Part shown: positions 5,100 to 54,877 of the stretch, one piece after another
Layout: the number at the start of each line of letters is the position of its first letter
How positions within the stretch are numbered: position 1 is the stretch's first letter
Assembly (NCBI GenBank): GCA_965644495.1
Contig: CBFFSA010000009.1
Location: 1-64,000, forward strand
Source of the DNA: Perkinsela sp. CCAP 1560/9
Lineage: Eukaryota > Protista > Euglenozoa: Kinetoplastea
Direction of reading: 5' to 3'
Length of the DNA: 64,000 nucleotides
Position numbers and translations under genes: made by a program
Notes under the pieces: generated by a model
Told to the model about the DNA's origin: nothing
The model's database searches: none
Seen by the model: the letters and a program-made list of their open reading frames with translations, nothing else

Positions 5100-6658
5100 C
5101 AGGGGTGAAAATCCCATGGTGGGGGGGGTCTAAAATTCGTAAAATTTGTCCAATTTTGGAAAATAATAGCGCGTTCGAGAGCTCTCGCAGAGTTGTATGT
5201 TTTAAGATAGGCAGTTTGCGGGGGTTAGGGGGGTACCCCCCTTTGATGGAAGAGTCAAAAACACGATTTGCAAATTTGAAAAACTGTAAAAAATGGTCAA
5301 AAATTACCCTTAATACCCACAGGAAGACCCGTTTCGCTCAATAACGATGCGACAACGCTTGCGGAAACTGCTCATCGTGTTAATACATTCTTGCCTGCGT
5401 TCTGATTGTAATCTTTCGAACGCTGTCTCAATAGCCGATACTAATTCAGCCCGATTCTTGGGTCGAAGATCATTTTTGATCCTGTCCATGGTCCCCCAAA
5501 GGTTTTCAATGGTATTTAAATCGGGGGATTTTGCAGGCCAAGAGAGTACATTAATACCTTCGTTGCGAAAGGTTGTTCGCGCAGAATTATGAACAGGACA
5601 ATTATCCATTGCAACGACCCCAGATGGGTGGCGCCTCAAATAATTTAAAAGTCCTTTGCGCTTCTTCATGGCGTCATTGAAAACATCCCCTGTTACAGTT
5701 ACTTTTCGGCCGGAAGGGTCGTGGGAGGGAAAAATGTGTAGATGAAATCCATGATTTAAACTGACCCCCATCCACACCATGACGCCGTTCCCTCCATACC
5801 AAGGTTCTAGCTCTCCCTGCTGTTCCTTGGCGGGGTCAGTCTTCCGGCAAAGGTAAGTAATTTTGTTTCGTCCCCTACCGCAAGTGAACTTCTTCTCATC
5901 GCAGAAAACAATTTGTCTCAGTTGGATATCTGACCAAGTGAGCATCTCAGAACAAAAATGCACTCGTTTCCTCTTGTGTTCATCGGTCAGTGCGGGCTTT
6001 CTTTTTAAAGTTCGCATGATCATACCATGGCTCTTCATAGCGTTAACCAAAGTTGGTCTTGAACACTGAAATCCAAGAGAAAGAACAACTCTATGGAGTG
6101 CACACCAGTTCTCAATCCCGTACGGGAGGTCACGGTATCCCTCATCAATGAGGCGGATAGCTGCTTCGTGCAGCGCAGGGGTACTGACAGGAGATGGGCG
6201 TGAAATAGGAGAGCTTTCCACGTCTCCAGTGTTCTCATAGCGTATCACAAGACGTTTTACTGTATTTTCGTGGACGCCGAAGTTTTGGGCTGTCCGAGAA
6301 TAGGACCCTGTCTCAAGATAATCTGAGACAAGAAGCATACGGTGACTTGGTAACACCCGTGCGGGGGAGGAATAGGACCTGTCGCTGAGTACACCACGTG
6401 AGGTTCGGGAACGAATCCGTTTCTGGGGCATATAGTGCTAATATTGACTGAAAAACAGCTAAAAACTGAAAAAACGTAAATTTGGGCAAGAAAAAAAATC
6501 ATGATTTTTTTTGTCTCATCGTTTCATGTTGAGTCACAGGCCGCAAATAGTGCTAAAACATACAACTCTGTGAGAGCTCTCGAATGCGCTATTACTTTCC
6601 AAAATTGGATAATTTTTACGAATTTTAGGCCCCCCCCACCACGAGGTTTTCACCCCTG
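5100..6658 (-). mobile_element. Full-length Tc1/IS630-like transposon
   Basis: ~100-bp imperfect TIRs starting CAGGGGTGAAAA, TA on both sides, intact transposase ORF. Confidence 0.95.
5310..6431 (-). CDS. Tc1-like transposase, 373 aa, DD32E
   Basis: N-terminal HTH, KP.LT..H...R..F, FCDEK, VMVW, MDN, WPAKSPDLNTIENLW. Confidence 0.95.
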   Translation of the reverse strand: MPQKRIRSRTSRGVLSDRSYSSPARVLPSHRMLLVSDYLETGSYSRTAQNFGVHENTVKRLVIRYENTGDVESSPISRPSPVSTPALHEAAIRLIDEGYRDLPYGIENWCALHRVVLSLGFQCSRPTLVNAMKSHGMIMRTLKRKPALTDEHKRKRVHFCSEMLTWSDIQLRQIVFCDEKKFTCGRGRNKITYLCRKTDPAKEQQGELEPWYGGNGVMVWMGVSLNHGFHLHIFPSHDPSGRKVTVTGDVFNDAMKKRKGLLNYLRRHPSGVVAMDNCPVHNSARTTFRNEGINVLSWPAKSPDLNTIENLWGTMDRIKNDLRPKNRAELVSAIETAFERLQSERRQECINTMSSFRKRCRIVIERNGSSCGY

Positions 6659-14519: not shown

Positions 14520-14548
14520 AAAGATACAGTTTCTGTACCTTGTTGGTA
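14520..14548 (+). other. Spliced-leader (mini-exon) relic
   Basis: AAAGATACAGTTTCTGTACCTTGTTG|GTA versus the conserved kinetoplastid SL 3' part GATACAGTTTCTGTACT(T/A)TATTG|GTA. Confidence 0.75.
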
Positions 14549-15081: not shown

Positions 15082-16022
15082 CAGGGGTGCGAATCTAAAG
15101 GTGGGGGGGGTCTAAAATTCGTAAAAGTTGTCCAATTTTGGAAAATAATAGCGCATTGGATAGCTCTCACAGAGTTGTATGTTTTAGGACAGGTAGCTTC
15201 CGGGGTTTGGGGGGTACCCCCCTTTCATGTAAGGGTCAAAAACACATATTGCAATACTTTAGTGGTGTCAATAATTTCTGTAATTTGGATTGCAAAAGAC
15301 AATTAGTAACCACAGTGCCCCCCGTTCCGACTAATAACAATTTCACAACGCTTCCTGAAACTCTTCAACGTTTTCTGAACCGTTGCAGAGTGGGTCTGTT
15401 CCAATTTAAGGAAAGACCCCTCAATAGCGGCTTCCAGTTGCTGTCGATTTCGGGGTCCAAGAAGATTTTTGTCTGTGTCCATCACAGACCAGAAGATCGC
15501 TCCAGCTCTCTACGCCGTAAACAAGGTTATACCCCTCGTCGACAAGCTTAAGAGCCACATCCAGGAACGCAGGGGCAACCACCGTCGAAACACGCTCTCG
15601 GGATGCCGTTAACACGTCACCCGTAAGGGTAAAACGTTCAACCCAACGTTTTACAGTGTTCTCATGAACGCTAAAGTGCTGTGCCGTAGCGGAGTACGAT
15701 CCTGTGCGCTCGTATTCCGCCACCAAAAGCATGCGGTGGCTCTCTTTGACGGGGGCGGGGGAAGAATACGATCTATCGCTCAGTACTCCACGGGAAGTCC
15801 TCGAGCGAGCGCGCTTTTGGGGCATTTTCTAGTAAAAAATGTAATTTCTGCAAGGGAAAAAAGCGAAATATGGTATCAAAAAATATGTACGTTAAAATCG
15901 CAGGATTTTAATGCGCCTAAAACATACAACTCTGTGAGAGCTATCCAATGCGCTATTATTTTCCAAAATTCGACAACTTTTACGAATTTTAGACCCCCCC
16001 CACCTTTAGACCCGCACCCCTG
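15082..16022 (-). mobile_element. Internally deleted Tc1-like element of the same family
   Basis: TIRs CAGGGGTGCG, TA flanks; N-terminal MPQKRARSR (15421..15825) joined to C-terminal GHCGY (15303..15485), catalytic core missing. Confidence 0.9.
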
Positions 16023-24790: not shown

Positions 24791-27700
24791 TATACTAGTT
24801 GGTACGTATTGGGACGATCTACCAGCAGAACCTTCATGAGACAGTTTTTAAAACGATCTACATTCGCCTTTGCAGCAGCGGGCCTTTGCAAGCGCTGACT
24901 GTCATGTACGGCGATAATGTGGCCCCCGACTTCTATGAGTACATAGCGATACTCATAGCGGAGAGAAGCATAAATGCGAGTAGCATGATTTACATTTTTC
25001 GGAAGTATCCCTCTAGCTAACATATTCTGTGTCACCCAGATGTTCCAGTAGACAATGTTAGACTCTTTGGATTCGGACAAATACAATTCCAAAACCCTTG
25101 TGCAGAAGGTGTCCAAAACGAGAGAAGAAATCATTACGTTACCACGGCGAAAGCGCTTCCAGTCGTCTGGTGTACTGTCTTCTTCAGAATCTTCATCAAG
25201 AAGTAGGGTTAAAGGTGTCGGGAGAGCGCTATGTAGGTTGATAGAATTTTGGAGAAAATTTCCTCTTGCATTCAACCGGACTCGGTTACGCGAACGTAAA
25301 TTTTCCCAAAATTATTTTCAACGCTCTTGAGGTCCTTTAATATGCGGGAATTTTCTTCCTTCGTCGAAGATTGAAAAATGACTATTGGAGGTAGCGGGAG
25401 CGCCTTTTTCGCACACACATCATATATCCCAGCCAGAAAAACAGTTACATTTTCTTTCTCATTGGTGCCCTTCACTCGCACGTTCAGAGCACCAATGGGA
25501 GCAACGCTCACACCTGTGGTTGGCCCGTCAATAGAGAGCGAAGTTCGTCCCCGAACAACACATAATTATATTTTCGAACCGTGTGCTGCACGTAAAAATT
25601 TTTTGCCCACACCTTGATTCGATTATCGATGTCTTTGGGGGAAATACATTGAGCTTTTCCAAACTTTCTATTCGTCCATCCGAAAACGTACTTGAATCGA
25701 TGGTACGTTTCCTCTTTCGCCTTCTCATACAGGTCAGATCGAAAAACACCACGTTCCTCCATCAAATGTAGAACGGTATGTTTCGTGATCGGTCGCATGC
25801 CATCGAGTTCGCCAAGGAGGATTTCATTTATCTTTTCCATTTCGACATGCCTGTCCTTGTTGAAACCCCTTTCACGCTTGCGACTACGGCCGCCTAGATT
25901 TGCCTTTTTCTGGTAAAATCCGGCACCATTTTTTCGGATGGATCGGATGCTTCGCGACGAAATGCCGTATTTGTCACTAAGTTGTTGTGCACTATTACTG
26001 GAGTGACACACAACTTCTCCTTCAACTTCTCCTGCATCGTGAGGTTCTTCCTTCCCTGAGGTGAACCGACGGACAATGGCAAAGTCGCCGGCTCGGGGCT
26101 CGAAACTGTTAGTTCGTTGGGGAGTCCAACGCGAGGAAGAGGGGGACGAAGCTTAACCCACTGTGTGAGTAATGGCATGTTAAAAAATATCGCAAATAAT
26201 TTTTTATATAGCAATATCTCTATGCATCTCCAATTTTTTTACGAAAACATGTAAAAAAAATGTTCAAAAAAAAGCTTTTTCTTGGGCGGAAGTATAAAGG
26301 GGGGGTACTAATTTTTCGGTTTCATAAAAACGGAAGTATAAAGGGGGGGTGACAGTAATTACTTATGGATGTAAAACTGGTGAACCTGGAGGAGAGTACA
26401 AGTTGTTATCTTAGATACCTGCCATCAAAATTTCACAAATAAGCGCTTCAAATAGATAATCGTTCTAATCCTACGTCAGTAAGGTTATCAAGCTCATGAG
26501 GCATGTATGTTTTAGTGATTCTTCGGAACGTATATTGTTGATCACTTTGCCAAAGTGAGTTTCTAGAGCGCCTATAATTGTTTGACGTAGAACGCATTCG
26601 TGCTCAAAAACGAGTTCATTGAACTTAAGAGTTTCATCCAGAGCGTGATCTCGGTCACTTTCACTCATTTCGAAAATGAAGCGAAAGCAGAGAAGTTTTT
26701 TCTCAACCCACCTTTTTGATGATCTAACAACAACCGAAGTAAAGTCCACTAGAAAAATGGCCATTGTGGCTTGCACAAGTTGTCACTGGCTTGCAGTGGC
26801 AGTACACATGAGGTCCATTAAGTAGTGTCAGGAAAGTAGTGAGGATTTTTTTCCTAAAAAATATTGATCGAATCGGTCGAAGTTGCATTTATAATTACTT
26901 ATGAAAGACATAGGAATTATAAGAGGGTTGAAACCTGTTAAGTTTTTCCGGGTTTTGCCAGGACACCTATTTTGGTGGGCATCATCTTGGGAGATGTGTC
27001 ACGACTTAAAGAAGGGGTATCTTGTGAAAAAAACGTCATAGAAAGATAGTACAGGTCCCAAACTCTCAAACTACTATACAAGTAAGTAATTTGGTTTTGA
27101 AAAACTATTTTTTAAGCCATGTTTTTCGCCAAGTTGACTTTTTTTTCAATTTTCTTTTCAGAAAAAACCGAACTTGACGGCCCCGTCCTGTTGATACCAG
27201 GGGGAAAATGTGCGCCAAGACCTCGGCTACCCTTTCTGGGGGTTTATTTCGAGTTTTTCAAAATTTTCGTTTTTTGTGGCGCAAAAATTGTTTTGCAGCG
27301 CAGGATGATGACCAAGTATGTTATTCACTAATTTTGACGAAGTACATTTCTTCGCCACGTCAATGAGGAATATGCGGGTTTTGCCAGGTTTTGCCTTTCA
27401 TAGATTTCAACACTCTTATTATTACAAATATTATTATTTCAGCTATGGAAGGTGCTTTAAAAGTGCTTTTCGAGCTTTTTTTAGTTTTCGAGCTTTCGAG
27501 CACATGTGTAGACCTTTACCCTGCGGATGCACTTATGTAAATGAGCATGTAGTGTGTGCATCCGTGGAATGCCGAATGAAAATGTGAGCCATACTTACGC
27601 GTGAAACGTTGTCGTAGAAATTTGGCCTAAAGAAGTAATATAGCTTTGAAATGTAATATCGATAATATGGGAAGTCTTTGTGAAGAACACATTTAAGGGT

Positions 27701-36621: not shown

Positions 36622-37689
36622 AGTGATTCGATCGTTTTTATAAAGTAGGCTCCTGATGTGAGTCTGACAACAATAATATAATCTTCTACTATATTACTGT
36701 GTTCCTGTGTTTTCTATCGTTTTTGAATCATAAAAAATATTTATAGGGCCGTTAGGGTAATTTCCAAGGATGTTTATTTTGGGCGTGGAATTTTTTTTTC
36801 ACGTTTAAAGGGTGCGAAAGAGCAGTTTTGGATGAAGGCTTACTGAATCAACTGTATGTAGACCGTGACCCCCCCTTAGTTATCTGACATTTTAGATCCA
36901 AAATCGGGTTTTTTGGGTAGCGTACTTATCGAAAAAACTACACAAAGGGCTGACTTATCCAAAAATCTTATCTGACTTAGCTGACTTATCCAAAAAAAAA
37001 GCTTCAGAGTAAGTGTCTTCAGCACGAAACAGAGTAAATGTCTTCAGCACGTAGTGCATGAACTACGAAACGAGTAATCTTTTTCCGTTTGCTGGTTGGC
37101 GAAGCTCGCTCTGCAGTCCACGCCACGCTGAAAAGTTCTCGCGATCCTGGTGCTTGAACTGCCAGTTGACTGACACATCCATAATTTGAACAAGGGAAGT
37201 GCAACCGGAAGGAACAAACAGACAACGCACTTCAAGTCCGCGACGGAAAGAGAGAACTTCCTCGAAACGATGCGCTGCGTTTTGAAACGATCGACTACGA
37301 GCAGCGTCTTCCGTGGTGGATAAGTGTTGTGGTCTAGCAAATTCTCTTTCAACCAAGCCAGAAAAGAATCGCCACTCACACATTGACAATGCATAGTTAC
37401 TGCACACTGATAATGCCTATAGCACATTTATACTGCATATAGCACATTGATAATGCAAGTCTTTGCCACTGAGTCTAACCACAGAAATCTCAGAAACGAG
37501 GAGAGAAAAGAAATGAAGCGGAGCTGTGGAGGCGTTTTTTGCAGGTGGTTATTGATCAGAGGTCTAATATCTTGGACGATTATTACGATCATCGTGTTGT
37601 TGGAAATAACGAAGAATAGCCCAAAAAAAGCAATCAAGAATGCTGCTCTTTTCTGCTCTTTTCTGCTCTTTTCTTTCTGATTCTTCCGA

Positions 37690-38240
37690 CGTGTCTACTA
37701 ATAACCCGCTACGTACCTTTGGAGCAATGTTACCTCGAGTGTTTTCGTCAAGCTCCTTTGGGCTGCTGTTCTGGAGAATTTCCTTAGGTCGTTGGTTAAT
37801 GGAATCACACACCGAGTCCAGAGTGGCTTGATAAATGTCAGTGAAAACAACCCACTTCGGATAGAAATGGCGCACCAGACCATTGAAAAGTTCTACCCCG
37901 CCCTTTTCCCAACTTGCGTAGGGCTTGCAAAAGAAGGTAAACAAAAGCTTGCGAAAGAAGGCAAAGAAGGCTTGCAAAAGAGGATAAACAGCCTAACGCT
38001 CCATTCACTGCTTCGTGCTTCGCAAATTCGGAGCCGTTTTCGTAGGTCAAAGTACGAACATGATAACCTCGCAGTGCTTGGATAATTTCCTGCGCAACGA
38101 GATTCGACCTTTTGCAAGACAGCTTGCGAAGGATGCCACCCGGATTTTCCATCTACAATGCTGAGAAAAAAGCCACTGTGCTTCGTCCCTTCAATTTTAA
38201 AAATGTAGGTCGCATTCCCAGTCTCCATACCGGGACCGAC
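37690..38240 (-). pseudogene. Decayed IS30-family transposase (C-terminal half)
   Basis: TLTYENGSEFAKH, KPYASWEKGGVELFNGLVRHFYPK, INQRPKEIL; frameshifts and a small internal duplication. Confidence 0.9.
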
Positions 38241-38306
38241 AGTTCACTGAATCGGGAAGAATTCTGAAGGTCAAATAAAAAACTCGTATGAGCTATCAAT
38301 GGATTG

Positions 38307-38428
38307 TATGCATTATCAATGTGCTATATGCATTATCAGTGTGCTATACGCATCATCAATGTGCCGCTTAGTATGCATTATCAATGTGCTATATTCTTAA
38401 TCAGTGTGCTATATGCACTATCAATGTA
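38307..38428. repeat. ~20-bp minisatellite TATGCATTATCAATGTGCTA; inverted array at 37378-37458, diverged array at 44420-44562
   Basis: Direct reading. Confidence 0.85.
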
Positions 38429-38823
38429 CGGGCGCCATCACCTGTAGCCCAGCCGGGCACTGCGGTAGTAGCAGTGCAACTGTACTTGGCAGCTGTACAA
38501 ATATTTTTGCATAAGCCGATTTTTTGGATAAGTAGCGTACTTGGATAACTAAGGGGGGGGGGTAACGGTATACACAAAAGCTGCCGGGTGCCCGACGTGT
38601 GGCGTAGGGACAAACATAAAATTTGCGAAAAATCCGGTAGATTAAATGAACCATGGACCTCTTGGCACTTACTCTTCTAGCGATTTAACATCTTACATAC
38701 CCATAGAGGGCTTAGAGTTGATCAAACAAATGCGTGAGAGGACTTTGAGTAGTGTAACCTGTACAATGGATGAACAGTAATGACCCCTCCATATTTTCGT
38801 ACCCACCCCTGTATAATGAAGAA

Positions 38824-39706
38824 ATTGCAGTGGTTGTAAAACTACCGCTCTACACTCGATTATTGAAAAAAAAGTGAACAAAAACAGTGAAAATATAAAG
38901 AGGAACACAGTAATATAATAGAAGAAAAAAATATAAAAGGGGGCTCCGGTGGTCCAAAACTGAAAAAAAAATTTGAAAAAAATGGGGGGTCCATGGGGGG
39001 GGTCCAGGGGGGTCATGGTCGAGCAAATTTTTTCGAAAAAATTAGTTTTCGAAAAAAAACCGTAGAAGGGGTAGCCGGGGTCTTGGCGCGCATTTTCCAC
39101 CCCCCTACGCCGGGGTGACCCCCCGCGTATCCGCAGGACGGGTCCGCCAAGTTCGGATTTTTTCGGAAATTTTTTTTGAAAAATAACTCAAATTGGCGAA
39201 AAATACAGCTTAAAAAATCGTTCTTCAAAATAGTTTCACCTATTGCATTTTGATAGTTTGGGACCTACACTAGCTTTCTCCGCAGTTGTTTTCGCAAGGT
39301 ATCCCTTCTTCGAACTGTGGTGCGCCCCTCAAAATGACCCATTTTTGACTCAAAAAGGTGAAAAAGTATTTTTCGGACCCCAAGGGGCATTTTTGTGTCG
39401 AAAGAATGGTATGGTTGGAGTCGCATTCTCTACCAAATACGTTCGGTAGGCTTCCATTCATGCCTACGAGTGATTTCCCATGCGCAAATGTCGGATTTAG
39501 TGCTCTGAGAGCAAAAATACGCGAAAATCACCCCATTTTTACCCGAAATTCGGCTATTTTTGGCTATAATCTTTTCCAGGCTAAATTTTCTTTTTTAGGC
39601 TCTTCGTTAAACGCGGTGGTAGTTTTCAACGCGAAGCGCTCAGCATGAGTGACTTCTAAGTTGAAAACAACCACCGCGTTTAACGAAGAGCCTAAAAAAG
39701 AAATTA
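38824..39706 (-). mobile_element. Family H element
   Basis: Reverse complement of 51602..52507 with small indels. Confidence 0.92.
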
Positions 39707-40050: not shown

Positions 40051-40960
40051 TTTGCGGTGGTTGTAAAACTACCGCTCTACACTCGATTATTGAAAAAAAA
40101 GTGAACAAAAACAGTGAAAATATAAAGGGGAACACAGTAATATAATAGAAGAAAAAAATATAAAAGGGGGCTCCGGTGGTCCAAAACTGAAAAAAAAATT
40201 TGAAAAAAATGGGGGGTCCATGGGGGGGGTCCAGGGGGGGGGGTCCAGGGGGGGGGGGCATGGTCGAGCAAATTTTTTCGAAAAAATTAGTTTTCGAAAA
40301 AAAACCGCAGAAAGGGTAGCCGGGGTCTTGGCGCGCATTTTCCACCCCCCTACCCGGGGGTGACCCCCCCGCGTATCCGCAGGACGGGTCCGCCAAGTTC
40401 GGATTTTTTCGGAAAAAAAAATTTGAAAAAAATTTCAACTTGGCGAAACAAATGACAAAAAAAATATTTTTCCAAAATCGTTTCCCCTATTGTATTTTGA
40501 TAGTTTGGGACCTACACTAGCTTTCTCCGCAGTTGCTTTCGCAAGGTATCACTTCTTCGAACTGTGGTGCGCCCCCCAAAATGACCCATTTTTGACTAAA
40601 AAAGGTGAAAAAGTATTTTTCGGACCTAAAGGGGCATTTTTGTGTCGAAAGAATGGTATGGTTGGAGTCGCATTCTCTACCCAATACGTTCGGTAGGCTT
40701 TCATTCATGCCTGCGAGTGATTTCCCACGCGCAAATGTCGGATTTAGTGCTCTGAGAGCAAAAATACGCGAAAATCACCCCATTTTTACCCGAAATTCGG
40801 CTATTTTTGGCCATAATCTTTCCGTTTTCCAGGCTAAATTTTCTTTTTTAGGCTCTTCGTTAAACGCGGAGGTAGTTTTCAACGCGAAGCGCGCAGCATG
40901 AGTGACTTCTAAGTTGAAAACAACCACCGCGTTTAACGAAGAGCCTAAAAAAGAAAATTA
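40051..40960 (-). mobile_element. Family H element
   Basis: Near-identical reverse complement of 51602..52507. Confidence 0.93.
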
Positions 40961-41527
40961 TAAAAATTTATTAGAAGAGGGTACGTTGGGTAAAAACTAA
41001 AATTGGTGAAAAGGTCAAGGATAGATTGGATCGCAGGTACCGGTGAAAAGGTGCATGGGTGAATCGAAGCAGGGGTGAAGGCCATAAGGGATCGGATTAC
41101 GTGTGTCACTATTGATAACCTTTTTAAAATATACGTATTAAGGAAATAGAATCCATCCCCCAGTAGTAGAATCTATTTTGGACCAAAGTGGCGAAATCCT
41201 TGTTACTGGGGGGTATGCTTTTTGGGTGTGGAAATACCTTATTAAGAAAAATTCTTGTTACCACCGCGTTTAATGAAGAGCCTAAAATATTATATTATTA
41301 CGCTTTTAAGGCTATGTTTGGCTAAAATTAATCTTAATTAAATTAACCGTAATATCATCCACTCGTAAATTAATAATTTGTAAACGCACTTTTTGAGTAA
41401 CTTTTAAACCATTATCCTTCAACGAATTCTGTTGTCCATCAAAAACACTAAAGTGTATCACTGTCAGTCTTGGTTGGGGCCCACAATAAATGAAGGAAAA
41501 AACCACTTTGAATTCTACCCGAGCGTA

Positions 41528-42480
41528 CTACTGCGAATCCTGTGAGCTGTCCATCAAAATACGAGGACGAAGCATAGGAGGGGCGATAACCTTGATATTT
41601 TCGATCAATTCAGTAGGCGAATTGTTCTCCAGGACATCTTTTGGTCGTTCGTTAATGGCTGCAGATGTCGTATCAAGCGCTGATTGCATGATATGTGTGA
41701 ACGATGTTCGCTTAGGGTAGAAATCACGAACAAGACCATTGAAATTTTCAACGCCGCCTTTCTCCCAACTTGCGTAGGACTGACAAAAGAATGATTGACA
41801 GCCCAATGAAGCGTTCTCTAGTTCGTGTTTCGCGAATTCGGTTCCATTGTCGTACGTGATACTGAAAACTTGGAACCCCTGCAGAGGACGAGTGACCTCC
41901 TCGGCCACAATTTCTGATTTCTTGTTCTCCAACTTCCGAAGAACTCCGTAGCGGCTTTTTCTCTCCACTAAACTGAGAAAATAGCCACCATGTTGCGCGC
42001 CTTCAATCAAGTCGCACTCCTAATCTCCATACCTGGAGCGAGTATTGACGAAACCTGGGCGCTCACTTATGTGAGTTCAATTTGGTATTTTCAGGCGATT
42101 TGTGCCCCGGCGCCTTCTACCGCGACCTCCCCCCGGCACAGGAACTGAACTAAATTCCCTGCTCTGTCTTCCCGTTTGACGAATCCATAAACTGCTACAC
42201 GAGAAATCTTTACCCCATCTTACTTAAAGAGAGTTCTAGAGATTTGCTGTGGGCTAAATCTCTTCCGCAGCAAAGTAATCACCTTCTCTTGAACCACACC
42301 TTGTATTTTCTGGTGCTTGTGTTTCCGCCAGGAAATGGATGTGTTTGCCGCTCGTTGCGCGCGCTTCGCATTATACTCCCCGTTACGCATACCTCGCGTG
42401 AGCTCGCGGCTCAGCGTTGACTGATTTAATGACAATTTTGCGGCTATTTCCTCCTGAGAGAAGCCTTACTGGTTGTATAC
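41528..42480 (-). pseudogene. Decayed IS30-family transposase
   Basis: STLSRELTR, FSPQQIS, GD*ECDLIEG, ITYDNGTEF, SWEKGGVENFNGLVR; stops and frameshifts. Confidence 0.92.
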
Positions 42481-42760
42481 TCCTCCTCTCTTTAATTTCT
42501 ATAAAGATAATTATAACAAAAAAGAAAATTCATATTTATATTTATAGAAATGAATGAGAGTGGTTTGGCAAAAAGTCCTGATAAATGATGCTGCCTGATG
42601 GAAATGTTTTTTCTGCGATAAACTATCGCATTTCTGCTATTTTTCTGCGATAAGCTATGGCGGAACGTGAGATCCAAGGCCCTTGCCGGAAGTGAGGGTC
42701 AAATTTTTCTGCGGTTCCACCAGCGAACCAAGCGAACCACTTTTTATGCTAAACAGTACC

Positions 42761-44180
42761 CGGATGTTCAACTCCAGTGCACCACCCCATTGTCAACTCC
42801 AGCGCACCACTTTTTTCACCATAGTCGACCGTCATTCCTTTTTTCTGCGCCTCACCATAGTTGAACATCGTTCCTTTTTCCTTTCAACATAAAAACTTAT
42901 CCAGAGTATTTAAAGAAAGTGTAATACAAGTGTAAGACCTGAGTAAGAAACTTTATTAGACAAGAATTTCTTCACCTTTACAAAATGCTTAAATTTAATG
43001 TCATTAAATTTCCAACACTAGCAGACTAACTTTACAAGCTTTCTCACGTACCTTTGCTTACTTAGCTTCTTTTACTTACGCAGTTCATTCACAAAATCCA
43101 TTGGAGAACGATAATTTAATAATTTCCGAGGACGAGTGTTCAATTCCAATGCTGTTTTGTTTAATTCACTTTGGTTCAAATTCTCAAAAGATTCGGTTTT
43201 CTGATGGAATTGTCGGATCAAACCGTTTGCATGTTCCACAGACCCTTTCTCCCACGAATGATATGGAGCGCAAAAGAAAGACTTGCATTTTAATTTTTTG
43301 TTTACTTCTTCATGGTGCCAGAATTCTGTTCCGTTGTCGTATGTGATTGTTTGAACCTTGTAATTCTTTAACCCGTCTACAATTTGTTTGCTTACCCCCT
43401 TCGCGTGCTTAGATTCCAACTTGCGAAGAACAAGGAAGCGACTCTTACGCTCGCACAGGGTAAGAATATATCCGGTATGTCCTCGACCCTCGACCAAGTC
43501 TGCTTCCCAATCGCCGTAGCGCCGACGCTTATTAACAATTTCTGGTCGATTTTCAAGTGGCGTTCGGTTGGGAATCGCGCTGCGATCAGGTCTGGTGCGA
43601 CGACGGTATGGCCTCTTTCGCCGGATCCGCAAATGGGTGTACAACTTGCCGCCTAAGGACGCGTTGCGACGAATATGGCGATATATGGTAGAAGTCGAGG
43701 CGGTACGACAGCTACGGATCGTATTTGCAATCTGTTCCGGGCTGTGCTTCTTTTGAAGTCGAGAGCTGACTTCCTCTTCCAAAAGGCCTTGTATCTTGTG
43801 AGGCTTGACCTTTTTACACGAGAGGCGTCTTTTCGAAATGCGCTGTGCCCTCGTCCCCTCATAGCGCTGACCCCTTCTTGCATTACGCGCCAACTCGCGA
43901 CAAACAGTGCTGTGACTTTTGCCAATTATGCGAGCTATGCTTCGCCGACTCTCGCCAGATGTAAAGAGTGATTGAATACGATTACGATCGTAATGACTGA
44001 GTCTTGAATAACGGCGCATTTGTAGTGTAGATCCGAAGGATATTATAAAATAATTCTTCTTTGAATAATTGATGGTGCATTGGAAATGAGAATACAGTTT
44101 TTAAGAAAAAGTGGTGCACTGGAAATGACAAGAAAATTATTTTTTGGGAAAAAAAGTGGTGCGTTGGTGTTGACAATCCG
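42761..44180 (-). mobile_element. Intact IS30-family element, 1420 bp
   Basis: IRs CGGATGTTCAACTCCAGTGCACCAC / CGGATTGTCAACACCAACGCACCAC (20 of 25 match), CC dinucleotide on both flanks, intact transposase. Confidence 0.9.
43072..44019 (-). CDS. IS30-family transposase, 315 aa, DD33E
   Basis: HTH (IARIIGKSHSTVCRELARN), HSPEQIA, STIYR, GDWEADLV, TITYDNGTEF, PYHSWEKGSVEHANGLIRQF, LNTRPRKLLNYRSP. Confidence 0.97.
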   Translation of the reverse strand: MRRYSRLSHYDRNRIQSLFTSGESRRSIARIIGKSHSTVCRELARNARRGQRYEGTRAQRISKRRLSCKKVKPHKIQGLLEEEVSSRLQKKHSPEQIANTIRSCRTASTSTIYRHIRRNASLGGKLYTHLRIRRKRPYRRRTRPDRSAIPNRTPLENRPEIVNKRRRYGDWEADLVEGRGHTGYILTLCERKSRFLVLRKLESKHAKGVSKQIVDGLKNYKVQTITYDNGTEFWHHEEVNKKLKCKSFFCAPYHSWEKGSVEHANGLIRQFHQKTESFENLNQSELNKTALELNTRPRKLLNYRSPMDFVNELRK

Positions 44181-44562
44181 CCGTACCACACAGTAGAAGT
44201 TTTTTACTCGATGTTACAGAGCAATATACAACATACATACAGTTAGTATTTTTTTCCTTATGTATTTAGGGTAATTCATCATGGAATAATCGTTAGGATG
44301 TAAACAATTTCATCTTTCTATCCAAAATATAATTTTCTTATGGATCGAAGACGTGTTATATGATATAACTTACATGTATATCACAGGAAGGGGTTCCAGA
44401 AATGCCGCTTACATATAGCCTATATGCATGTGAATGTGCTTAGTATGTATTATCAATGTGCAGTAAATATGCATTTGAATGTGCTATACGCATCTGAATG
44501 TGCTGTTATGCGTGTTAATGTGCTGTTATGCACCTGAATGTGCTAATATGCATCATGTGCTA

Positions 44563-45396
44563 TTAAGGATCTTCGTTAAACGCGGTGGTTGTTTTCAACT
44601 TAGGAGTCACTCATGCTGTGCGCTTCGCGTTGAAAACTACCACCGCGTTTAACGAAGAGCCTAAAAAAGAAAAATTGGTCTTGAAAGATTAAGAAAATGT
44701 CATGAATGAAAGCCTACCAAACGTATCGGGTAAAGAATGCGACCCCAGCCACACCATTCTTTCGACACAAAAATTCCCCTTGGGGTCCGAAAAATACCTT
44801 TTGTCATTTTTTAGTCAAAAGTGGGCCATTTTGGATGGCCCAACACGTCTACAAGAAGAGGTCTCTTGCGAAAGCAACGGTGTGGAAAGCTAGTACAGCT
44901 TCGATAGTATAAACTATCGAAATACAATAGGGCAAAGGAATTGGAAAAATATTTTTTTTTGCCATTTTTTTCGCCAAGTTGAATTTTTTTCCTAAAACAT
45001 TTTCCGAAAAAACCCGAACTTGGCGGACCCCTCCTGCGGATACGCGGGGGAGTCGCCCCCGGTTAGGGGGGGGGGAATGCGCGCCAAATGCAAGAACCCG
45101 GCTACCCTTTCTAAGTTTTTTTTTCGCAAAATAATTTTTTCAAAAAATAAATCGTGCGGTATGCCGCCTCCTGCCCCGCCCCCTGCCCCCCCTTGGACCC
45201 CCCCCCTGGACCCCCCCCCCCCCATAGACCCCCCATTTTTTATTAAATTTCAATTTCAGTTTTGGACCACCGGAGGCCCCTTTTATATTTTTTTCTTCTA
45301 TTATATTACTGTGTTTCTCTTTATATTTTCACTGTTTTTGTTCTCTTTTTTTTTGAATAATCAAGGGTAGAGCGGTAGTTACAAAACCACCGCAAT
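44563..45396 (+). mobile_element. Family H element, diverged
   Basis: Both termini present, internal deletion. Confidence 0.88.
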
Positions 45397-53305: not shown

Positions 53306-54877
53306 CAGGGGTGAAAACTTCCATCTGGGGGGGGTCTAAAATTTGTAAAAACTTTTCAATTTTGTAAAATAATAGCGCATTCGAGAGCTCTCGCAGAGTT
53401 GTATGTCTTCGTACTGGTAGCTTTTAACATATCAAAGTGGAACTACAAATGCCGAATAGGTCAAAAACTCGAATTGTCACTTGAAAAATGATACAAAAAA
53501 GTTAAAAAATAACGTTTTTCCCCCCAAGAAAATTGTTAGTAACCCCTGTTAGTATCCGCAATGTGCACCGTTCTTTTCTACAATGATTCTACAACGCTTT
53601 CTGAAGCTTTTTAGCGTATTCTCAAATTTAGATATTTGTTCTGTCTTAAGTTTATCATAGGAATCATGAATTGCGGAGAGTAATTGTTGTTGATTTTTGG
53701 GTTGAATTTGGTCCTTTGTCCCGTCCATTATTGACCAAAGATTTTCTATGGGGTTTAGATCAGGGGATCGTGCTGGCCATCGGAGCCAAGAATAACCCTT
53801 TTCTTGGGCCGCGGCACGAGCCTTATTATGTGCCGGGCAATTGTCCATCACTATTGTGGCCCGATGTCTCCTTAAATATTGGAACAGACCCCCCCTTTTT
53901 TTCATGGCTTCATAAAAATTTTGTTCCTTTACAATTACTTTGTTTCCTTGAGAATCATGGGTAGTAAAGACGTGTAAATGAAACCCATTCTTTAAGCTCA
54001 CCCCCATCCAAACCATAATGCCTTCTCCACCATGATAGGGTTCTAATTCCCCTGTCTGTTCTTTGGGGGGGTCAAATTTTCGGCAAAGGTACGTGGGTCG
54101 GGTGGATCTTTTGCACGTAAATGTTTTTTCGTCGCAGAAAATAATATTTTCCAGCGCAGCGTCGCTCCACTGTAGCATTTCAGTGGCAAATTGCACTCTG
54201 CGCTCCTTATGATTATTAGATAAGAAAGGGGTCTTTAAAGCTGTTCTGAGCACAATTTTTTCTTTTGAGTTTTTCAACATGTTCCTTAGGGATGTTATTG
54301 AACATGTGAAGCCACGTCGCTTTACCTCTCTCCAGAGCTCGCTCCAAGTGGAGATACCATAAGGAAGGTCACGATAAGCGTCATCAATAAGCTTTAAAGA
54401 TACTTTCATAAGATCAGAGGTGGTGACCCTAGGTTGACGCGTAGGGGATGGACTGGCCACGTCGTCAGTGCAATTAAATCTTTCCACCCAGAGTTTCACA
54501 GTTCCCTCGTGGACACCAAAATTTTGGGCAGTCCGGGAATAAGACTCTGTTTTCTCAAAGTCCGCCACAAGAAGCATCCTGTGACTTTCCTTAATCTTCC
54601 CTGGTGAGGCATAGGAGCGTGCGCTCAAAACACCACGGGAAGTCCTTGAGCGAACTCGCTTTTGAGGCATAAAATGGGGAAAAACAAAAAACTGCCATAT
54701 TTTCACAGGAAGAAAAAATTATTTTTTTGTCATCAGATTAAATCTTTCAAGTCGAGCGTTCCGAATACGCCAAAGACATACAACTCTGCGAGAGCTCTCC
54801 AATGCGCTATTATTTTACAAAATTGAGCAAATTTTACAAAATTTAGCCCCCCCCCCAGATGGAAGTTTTCACCCCTG
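53306..54877 (-). mobile_element. Full-length Tc1/IS630-like transposon (second subfamily)
   Basis: ~105-bp TIRs CAGGGGTGAAAACTTCCATCTGGGG, TA on both sides. Confidence 0.95.
53549..54670 (-). CDS. Tc1-like transposase, DD32E
   Basis: ORF 53549..54706, start MPQKRVRSR by homology; FCDEK, MDN, WPARSPDLNPIENLW. Confidence 0.95.
   Translation of the reverse strand: MPQKRVRSRTSRGVLSARSYASPGKIKESHRMLLVADFEKTESYSRTAQNFGVHEGTVKLWVERFNCTDDVASPSPTRQPRVTTSDLMKVSLKLIDDAYRDLPYGISTWSELWREVKRRGFTCSITSLRNMLKNSKEKIVLRTALKTPFLSNNHKERRVQFATEMLQWSDAALENIIFCDEKTFTCKRSTRPTYLCRKFDPPKEQTGELEPYHGGEGIMVWMGVSLKNGFHLHVFTTHDSQGNKVIVKEQNFYEAMKKRGGLFQYLRRHRATIVMDNCPAHNKARAAAQEKGYSWLRWPARSPDLNPIENLWSIMDGTKDQIQPKNQQQLLSAIHDSYDKLKTEQISKFENTLKSFRKRCRIIVEKNGAHCGY

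Follow-up and report, generated by a model that had tools for sequence, protein, structure and literature searches.

Insertion sequences (ISs) of the IS30 family are defined by a transposase with an N-terminal helix-turn-helix (HTH) and a D-(54-61)-D-(33)-E core (PMC2516522), and they move by a copy-out/paste-in route via circles or dimers, whose junction between two inverted repeats (IR-IR junction) then integrates (PMC9333248). Published lists of the ISs that have a counterpart in eukaryotes (PMC10045372, PMC5718144) do not include this family, in agreement with a remark of the initial annotation of this DNA that IS30 is not a recognised eukaryotic superfamily. Among described systems, IS481EU of parabasalids (PMC10045372) is also a prokaryotic IS-type DDE element found in protists and was proposed as a eukaryotic superfamily, but it has TG..CA ends and target site duplications (TSDs) of 4, 15 or 25 bp, whereas the element described here has GG-type ends and a 3-bp TSD; it differs from IS481EU and IS3EU alike in transposase type, ends and TSD. 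The Merlin transposon of Perkinsela sp. CCAP 1560/4 and Bodo saltans (PMC8101967) is likewise a DNA transposon of IS-like ancestry in basal kinetoplastids, but it is of the IS1595 type, inactive and devoid of TIRs and TSDs, whereas our element is intact at both ends, is flanked by TSDs and exists in near-identical copies, and carries neither the DDE_Tnp_IS1595 domain nor the 8-9-bp TSD of Merlin. Trypanosomatids are reported to be without DNA transposons, the kinetoplastid Merlin example being inactive (PMC12278014, PMC8101967). A bacterial IS was also transferred to a eukaryote in the case of IS5 in bdelloid rotifers (cited in PMC10045372), but that IS belongs to another family, and the lineage described here has given rise to many families, the ends of which were remodelled. 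Neither the Perkinsela genome paper nor its supplements (PMC5601477) mention IS30. Our search of a mostly open-access literature found no paper on natural IS30 elements in eukaryotes, a prior record being possible. Szabo et al. are said to have engineered IS30 transposition in zebrafish in 2003 (as listed in PMC2831304); although artificial, such a system suggests that eukaryotic cells can support the activity of an IS30 transposase.

The element that we describe here lies in a window of 64,000 nucleotides (the whole stretch of DNA that was analysed), which is the start of contig C9 in a 21.0-Mb, 110-contig assembly (G000). It is a full-length IS30-family element of 1424 bp (42759-44182, minus strand), assigned to family A of clade I, and its ends are common to seven full copies. 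As initially annotated, its transposase gene (43072-44019, minus strand) is an uninterrupted open reading frame (ORF) of 315 amino acids with IS30 hallmarks: residues 3-46 correspond to an N-terminal HTH_38 domain, a SPEQ motif is present, and the catalytic triad consists of D174, D228 and E262, the second D and the E being separated by the announced 33 residues. D174 and D228 are 54 positions apart (53 between), a distance that is ungapped in the alignment with bacterial IS30 proteins, to which the whole catalytic core aligns without insertions. Profile searches gave 245.3 bits against the transpos_IS30 model NF033563 (cut-off 80), only 58 bits against the IS481 model NF033577 (cut-off 224) and a score far under the cut-off for the IS21 model; the transposase has no sequence match among solved structures. 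A contig from run X1 skips 216 bases over the start of this gene (window 43936-44153) and represents either another deletion derivative or an allele.

Both ends carry the imperfect IRs of some 25 bp that were noticed initially (the family norm being about 26 bp), and these match at 17 of 24 positions. The left one (44158-44182, minus strand) starts with GGCGGATT, as bacterial relatives do, and the right one (42759-42783, plus strand) starts with CC, which mismatches the GG of the left end. Read in transposase orientation, family A elements thus finish in GG on either side, and the inversion does not extend to the outermost two bases. The initial annotation had drawn the element at 42761-44180, with CC on both flanks. 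A fixed GG/CC target duplication is ruled out by empty sites and by a variable duplication further out: the CC is common to all seven full copies and missing from paralogous empty sites, and a differing 3-bp duplication sits outside it at every full copy. The element is thus 2 bp longer on each side than first drawn and is flanked by a duplicated GTA (42756-42758 and 44183-44185, plus strand), a length within the 2-3 bp expected of the family.

In all these respects it resembles prokaryotic IS30 elements (IS30, IS1655, ISLxc3), which also have a single ORF with an HTH and a D-D-33-E core, imperfect IRs of about 25 bp, the same left-end start, a 3-bp (sometimes 4-bp) TSD and tolerated mismatches at the terminal bases, the latter being common among its bacterial relatives. 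In contrast to them, it has a nuclear eukaryotic host, a greater length, two or three IR cores or whole arrays per end, many non-autonomous and decayed copies, and about nine coexisting families. By protein, IR and TSD, it is a member of IS30; by host and ends, it is a new form of that family.

A protein search with the transposase gave 127 matches on more than 20 contigs of the 21-Mb assembly, and a search with the IS30 model gave 96, of which 55 were above the cut-off; the terminal-IR pattern of clade I found 45 ends and a control pattern none. As the initial annotation had proposed, copies, IRs and TSDs could be collected: seven full family A copies sit on C2 (two), C3, C4, C7, C9 and C10 in unrelated flanks, and each (7/7) has its own 3-bp direct repeat (CTT, GGA, TAC, GAT, GAC, CCT and TTT, TAC being that of the window copy, GTA on the plus strand). 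Five of them differ mutually by 3-8 of 1424 bases, and the other two by 26-45, showing a very recent burst of transposition. One C2 copy (L001) lies within a host repeat, other members of which read through with a single CTT and no GG, so that these paralogous empty sites fix both the boundary and the TSD. Both ends were available for 21 clade I elements, of which 16 carry a duplication of 3 bp and 2 one of 4 bp, the other 3 having no clean one. Of five deletion derivatives of family A, which measure 731-1356 bp, four are flanked by separate 3-bp duplications; with their intact ends, such derivatives most likely moved in trans, a later deletion being possible for any single one. Clade II elements are also flanked by 3-bp duplications, as seen at L020 and L021 (CAT, GTC) and at window positions 37371-38436 (ATC). 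Two clade I copies on C1 and C18 (L010 and L011) have a left end that begins with TG instead of GG and a 4-bp duplication in both cases; their close GG-ended relatives L023 and L080 have 3-bp duplications. L011 has lost two of its three left cores, yet its duplication is clean.

The ends of these elements are remodelled. Inside the left end, the window element has two extra copies of the IR core (44067-44131, minus strand; spacing 45 and 39 bp), and its right end contains a second one (42787-42808, plus strand), giving three cores on the left and two on the right for family A, compared with three and three for family C. From their match to the terminal IR, these cores are putative transposase binding sites. 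In clade II, where ends were read from 1.5-kb flanks and ENA contigs, they consist of inverted arrays of an approximately 20-bp unit, which reach 24 copies at the left end of L020 and are delimited by short termini that are conserved and by 3-bp duplications. A single core per end (1+1) is present in about 22 relatives, bacterial or metagenomic, whose ends are credible; the automatic IR finder gives chance pairs at many loci, and only relatives with family-type ends were counted. The usual IS30 architecture of one core per end was not encountered in our element (3+2, and up to 24 units in clade II), the end architecture of which was not seen in these bacterial relatives. Multiplied cores are a derived state, the single core being outside the formal definition of IS30. 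Clade I elements are 1.4 kb and complete clade II elements 2.3-2.5 kb long, compared with 1.07-1.22 kb for bacterial relatives.

Besides family A, there are about eight other families, and the transposases of the genome as a whole fall into two clades (clade I: families of L003, L009, L014, L010 and L015; clade II: L017/L019, L020/L022, L021/L028, L024, L026, L144 and others). Amino acid identity is about 50-80% between families within a clade and about 36-45% between clades, the overall figure for the other families being 40-60%. Sister families gave dN/dS values of 0.12 and 0.10, and dS was saturated for deeper pairs. Most pairs within families were near neutral (dN/dS 0.17-0.89, with few changes), as expected of copies after insertion. 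ORFs are kept in several families of both clades and dozens of copies are decayed; GC3 is 0.42-0.54 in the IS30 families, 0.43-0.52 in host leucine-rich repeat (LRR) genes and 0.70-0.74 in two bacterial relatives. These sequence comparisons point to a long history of selection for transposition within the host genome. A tandem array at G000:C20:102500-109500 (L075) consists of nine units of about 560 bp, each made of a clade II left end and about 90 N-terminal codons, and is a satellite born from an IS30 end.

We then considered where these copies reside. That they would come from a culture bacterium, whose IS30 was stitched into eukaryotic contigs by chimeric assembly, gains some weight from the mixed sample behind the assembly, which contains two 18S genes, one on the small contig C58 (32767-34872) that we take to be amoebozoan-type and one on C11 that we take to be kinetoplastid-type; amoeba host sequence is thus present in part of the assembly. 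It gains a little more from the bacteria that Paramoeba cultures carry (PMC5601477) and from the short Logan contigs examined, which gave no long-read bridge. These contigs, which may come from the source sample, show that each of four runs belonging to a single study has the element; two contigs cross element junctions, but with only 25 and 30 letters inside, so that none bridges a junction above our bar of 31 letters. However, each site has a different 3-bp duplication, empty paralogous sites lie inside host repeats, the copies are mutually nested with pogo, Tc1, retroelement and SL-like sequences, and dozens of them are decayed. The same sites also recur in a second assembly, ENA ERZ24900291 (L006=L031; L014=L032 at 99.9% over 3.7 kb), and the near-identical bacterial copy that the initial annotation had asked about was looked for, with no relative outside the organism exceeding 50% amino acid identity. 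We consequently consider contamination to be highly improbable. A location of the copies in the genome of a Paramoeba-like amoeba host, instead of its kinetoplastid endosymbiont, was judged just as improbable and is largely refuted: the amoebozoan-type 18S and the Discosea labels among the clusters nearest to the window LRR protein (an intronless gene whose nearest clusters are Euglenozoa/Discosea) would fit it, but it is C11, with the kinetoplastid-type 18S, that also bears IS30 copies. Around copy L144 (ENA ERZ24900291), eukaryotic genes without introns are clustered on one strand (Myb, Mago nashi, helicase, kinesin, PIG-P, HSP90, Vps53, uS17); searches with Mago nashi and with a CobW gene gave only hits labelled Eukaryota and hits without a name, respectively, but the uS17 protein, encoded about 4 kb from the copy, matches uS17m proteins of about 310 amino acids with E values of 1e-104 to 1e-108 (next: 1e-14). 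The entries concerned (PDB 7aor, 6hiv, 6sga and 7ane) are, we assume, trypanosomatid mitoribosomes. Outside the element, the window itself has a spliced-leader (SL)-like motif at 14523-14538 (plus strand; 0 expected by chance), which presumably resembles the kinetoplastid SL, and three weaker copies elsewhere. Intronless window genes and SL-like motifs again speak against the amoeba, whose genes are intron-rich (PMC5601477). The published traits of Perkinsela sp., the Paramoeba endosymbiont, include leucine-rich genes numbering in the hundreds, dispersed fragments of the SL and genes that lack introns (PMC5601477). We identify the host as a kinetoplastid that is very probably similar to Perkinsela. 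Altogether, these data support the amplification, diversification and decay of an IS30 lineage in the nuclear genome of a kinetoplastid, and we hold it to be very likely that this lineage resides and transposes within the eukaryote. All eukaryote-type copies belong to a single organism, represented by G000 and by ENA ERZ24900291, which may be one and the same sample; this includes 7/7 of the in-clade database proteins that were traced, which came from ENA ERZ24900291. At G000:C12:81929-81955 (L019), an SL-like motif starts exactly where a clade II gene is broken near its 3' end by an insert of about 1.2 kb.

Concerning the origin of this lineage, the best matches outside the organism have 45-50% amino acid identity; named relatives are mostly from Verrucomicrobiota metagenome-assembled genomes (MAGs; 41-44%), the nearest prokaryotic IS30s (43-49%) being in such MAGs and in metagenomes. 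Scans of metagenomes, viruses, plasmids and prokaryotic genomes gave only relatives at 46% or less, with no sign of a viral vector in the viral and plasmid scans. The transposases nest in bacterial IS30 diversity, in a 45-row group with Verrucomicrobiota-type IS30s (FastTree support 92). The initial annotation had proposed that one lineage moved into the protist, amplified and decayed there: the 127 matches, near-identical copies with TSDs and saturated dS bear out the amplification and the decay, while the evidence on one or two entries is divided. Two independent acquisitions from related bacteria, giving rise to clades I and II and fitting either mechanism of movement discussed below, would explain why between-clade identity is not above the best outside match of each clade, and the end architectures of the clades do differ. 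The grouping of the clades in trees, about which the initial annotation had asked, differs between analyses: a FastTree of 181 rows unites them with a support of only 18 and an AU test did not reject clade I with the outside proteins P0002/P0003/P0008 (p-AU 0.165), but a PMSF mixture-model tree of 41 rows (without L135, the branch of which is very long, three rows that nearly duplicate genome copies, and 20 rows of bacterial type) places both in one group (97/91) and a quick tree of 65 rows unites them at 80, long-branch attraction being possible. Multiplied end cores are also found in both clades and in none of the bacterial relatives. We therefore regard two acquisitions as a serious but distinctly less probable explanation, and a single acquisition is favoured. 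Concerning movement, the main rival is that the resident element switched to a eukaryote-style cut-and-paste, with a paired complex on multiplied sites and host repair. Eukaryotic cut-and-paste elements have multi-site ends and long subterminal arrays, which the ends described here resemble, and non-autonomous derivatives exist here too. No clade I IR-IR junction (dimer) was found in the assembly using a strict pattern that includes neighbouring IR bases, but a consensus assembly without dimers says little about transient circles. Moreover, the catalytic core has no insertions relative to bacterial IS30, left-end start and TSD length are unchanged, and the terminal dinucleotide mismatch seen in most families is ordinary for this IS30 subgroup (PMC2516522), making such a switch unlikely.

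The whole account that we propose, with a probability of roughly 0.6, is that a bacterial IS30 became a long-resident, autonomous nuclear transposon, which likely moves by copy-out/paste-in. An IS30-family DDE transposon would have been acquired from a bacterium, followed by long nuclear residence in a Perkinsela-like kinetoplastid; there, it inserts at varied sites through a staggered cut of 3 bp, or of 4 bp in one of its subfamilies, and its families diverged under purifying selection as their ends gained IR-core copies. The transposase may be translated from host-type polycistronic, trans-spliced RNA, and its HTH domain may bind the repeated IR cores; after a nick, one end would be linked to a position immediately beyond the other, host replication or repair would resolve the joined ends into a circle, and the IR-IR junction would integrate, with the extra cores probably raising binding and end pairing in the nucleus. 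Since the core, the left-end start and the TSD length are the same as in bacterial relatives, of which the multi-copy ones show the same left-end start and 3-bp duplications (4-bp in one family), copy-out/paste-in is the most likely route and, once residence is granted, we consider a circle route reasonably probable. The element had no match in the RNA runs searched. A near-identical 20-mer found at 16 sites (on C1, C2, C3, C8, C9, C11, C12, C14, C15, C18 and C82) resembles the end of the right IR followed by a spacer and by the beginning of the left IR; it was considered as an IR-IR junction but fails the stricter pattern and was therefore assigned to another repeat.

We thus see in these elements a candidate eukaryotic DNA transposon group of IS30 origin, from one organism. 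The broader claim, namely an undescribed eukaryotic IS30-derived group with a nuclear circle route, non-autonomous derivatives, and eukaryote-like multi-site and array ends that evolved from a single-site bacterial IR within a kinetoplastid endosymbiont, which would be the first recently active kinetoplastid DNA transposon, is put forward tentatively, at slightly less than even odds. With bacterial relatives at 45-49%, this genome offers a shallow and still readable case of an IS turning into a eukaryotic transposon, and the gradation of its ends (a single core, then two or three cores, then long arrays) makes the origin of subterminal repeats testable. The same is true of copy-out/paste-in with eukaryotic replication and repair, and of the expression of a promoterless element where transcription is polycistronic and RNA is trans-spliced. 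Another question to which this case is relevant is how the genome of an obligate eukaryotic endosymbiont changes in size, the assembly being 21 Mb (including some amoeba sequence) compared with 9.5 Mb published.

The two decayed IS30 relatives reported initially near the intact element are indeed present in the window. One is a clade II copy with a frameshift and stops (41470-42480, minus strand), whose DNA is 94% identical to copy L144 and whose protein is 87-92% identical to P0123. On the other side of the intact element, an array of approximately 20-bp units (44423-44556, minus strand) shows 92% identity with the array at the left end of L144. Since gene and array both match L144, the intact element appears to be nested in an older IS30 copy: the array is most likely the displaced left end of that copy, into the 5' part of which we infer that the intact element jumped, approximately 400 bp of additional inserted DNA now surrounding it. 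The other relative is an internally deleted clade II element of 1066 bp with inverted arrays of approximately 20-bp units at both ends (37371-38436, minus strand), flanked by its ATC duplication (37368-37370 and 38437-38439). As described initially, it is hosted by a decayed pogo-like element (36863-38568, minus strand) with DDE_1 remnants, whose TIRs at about 36863 and 38568 flank it, the DDE_1 matches being weak (E 0.0017 and 0.039, under the Pfam curated cut-off).

LRR genes in the window are all on the plus strand, and nearly all transposase remnants are on the minus strand: three IS30, Tc1-like ones at 5310-6431, 15421-15825 and 53549-54706, and pogo-like ones at 25508-26011 and 37044-37427. 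These remnants are antisense to the presumed polycistronic unit; elsewhere, copies L031 and L032 are antisense to their neighbours and L144 is sense. Two of the Tc1-like regions (5310-6431 and 53549-54706) are open Tc1/IS630-like transposases of 373 and 385 amino acids with DDE_3 and HTH_Tnp_Tc3_2 domains, a type without report from kinetoplastids in the literature examined. ENA ERZ24900291 also contains an open Merlin-type transposase (L234:152-1111; DDE_Tnp_IS1595, 319 amino acids) and an open DDE_Tnp_4 transposase of the Harbinger/ISL2EU-like type (L146:3832-4902; 356 amino acids), and the genome holds at least five types of DNA transposons. A hairpin repeat of about 100-130 bp with arms of 37-47 bp was found at window positions 39573-39703, 40826-40959 and 44563-44665; it has an extreme depth in Logan contigs and often lies beside or inside IS30 ends.
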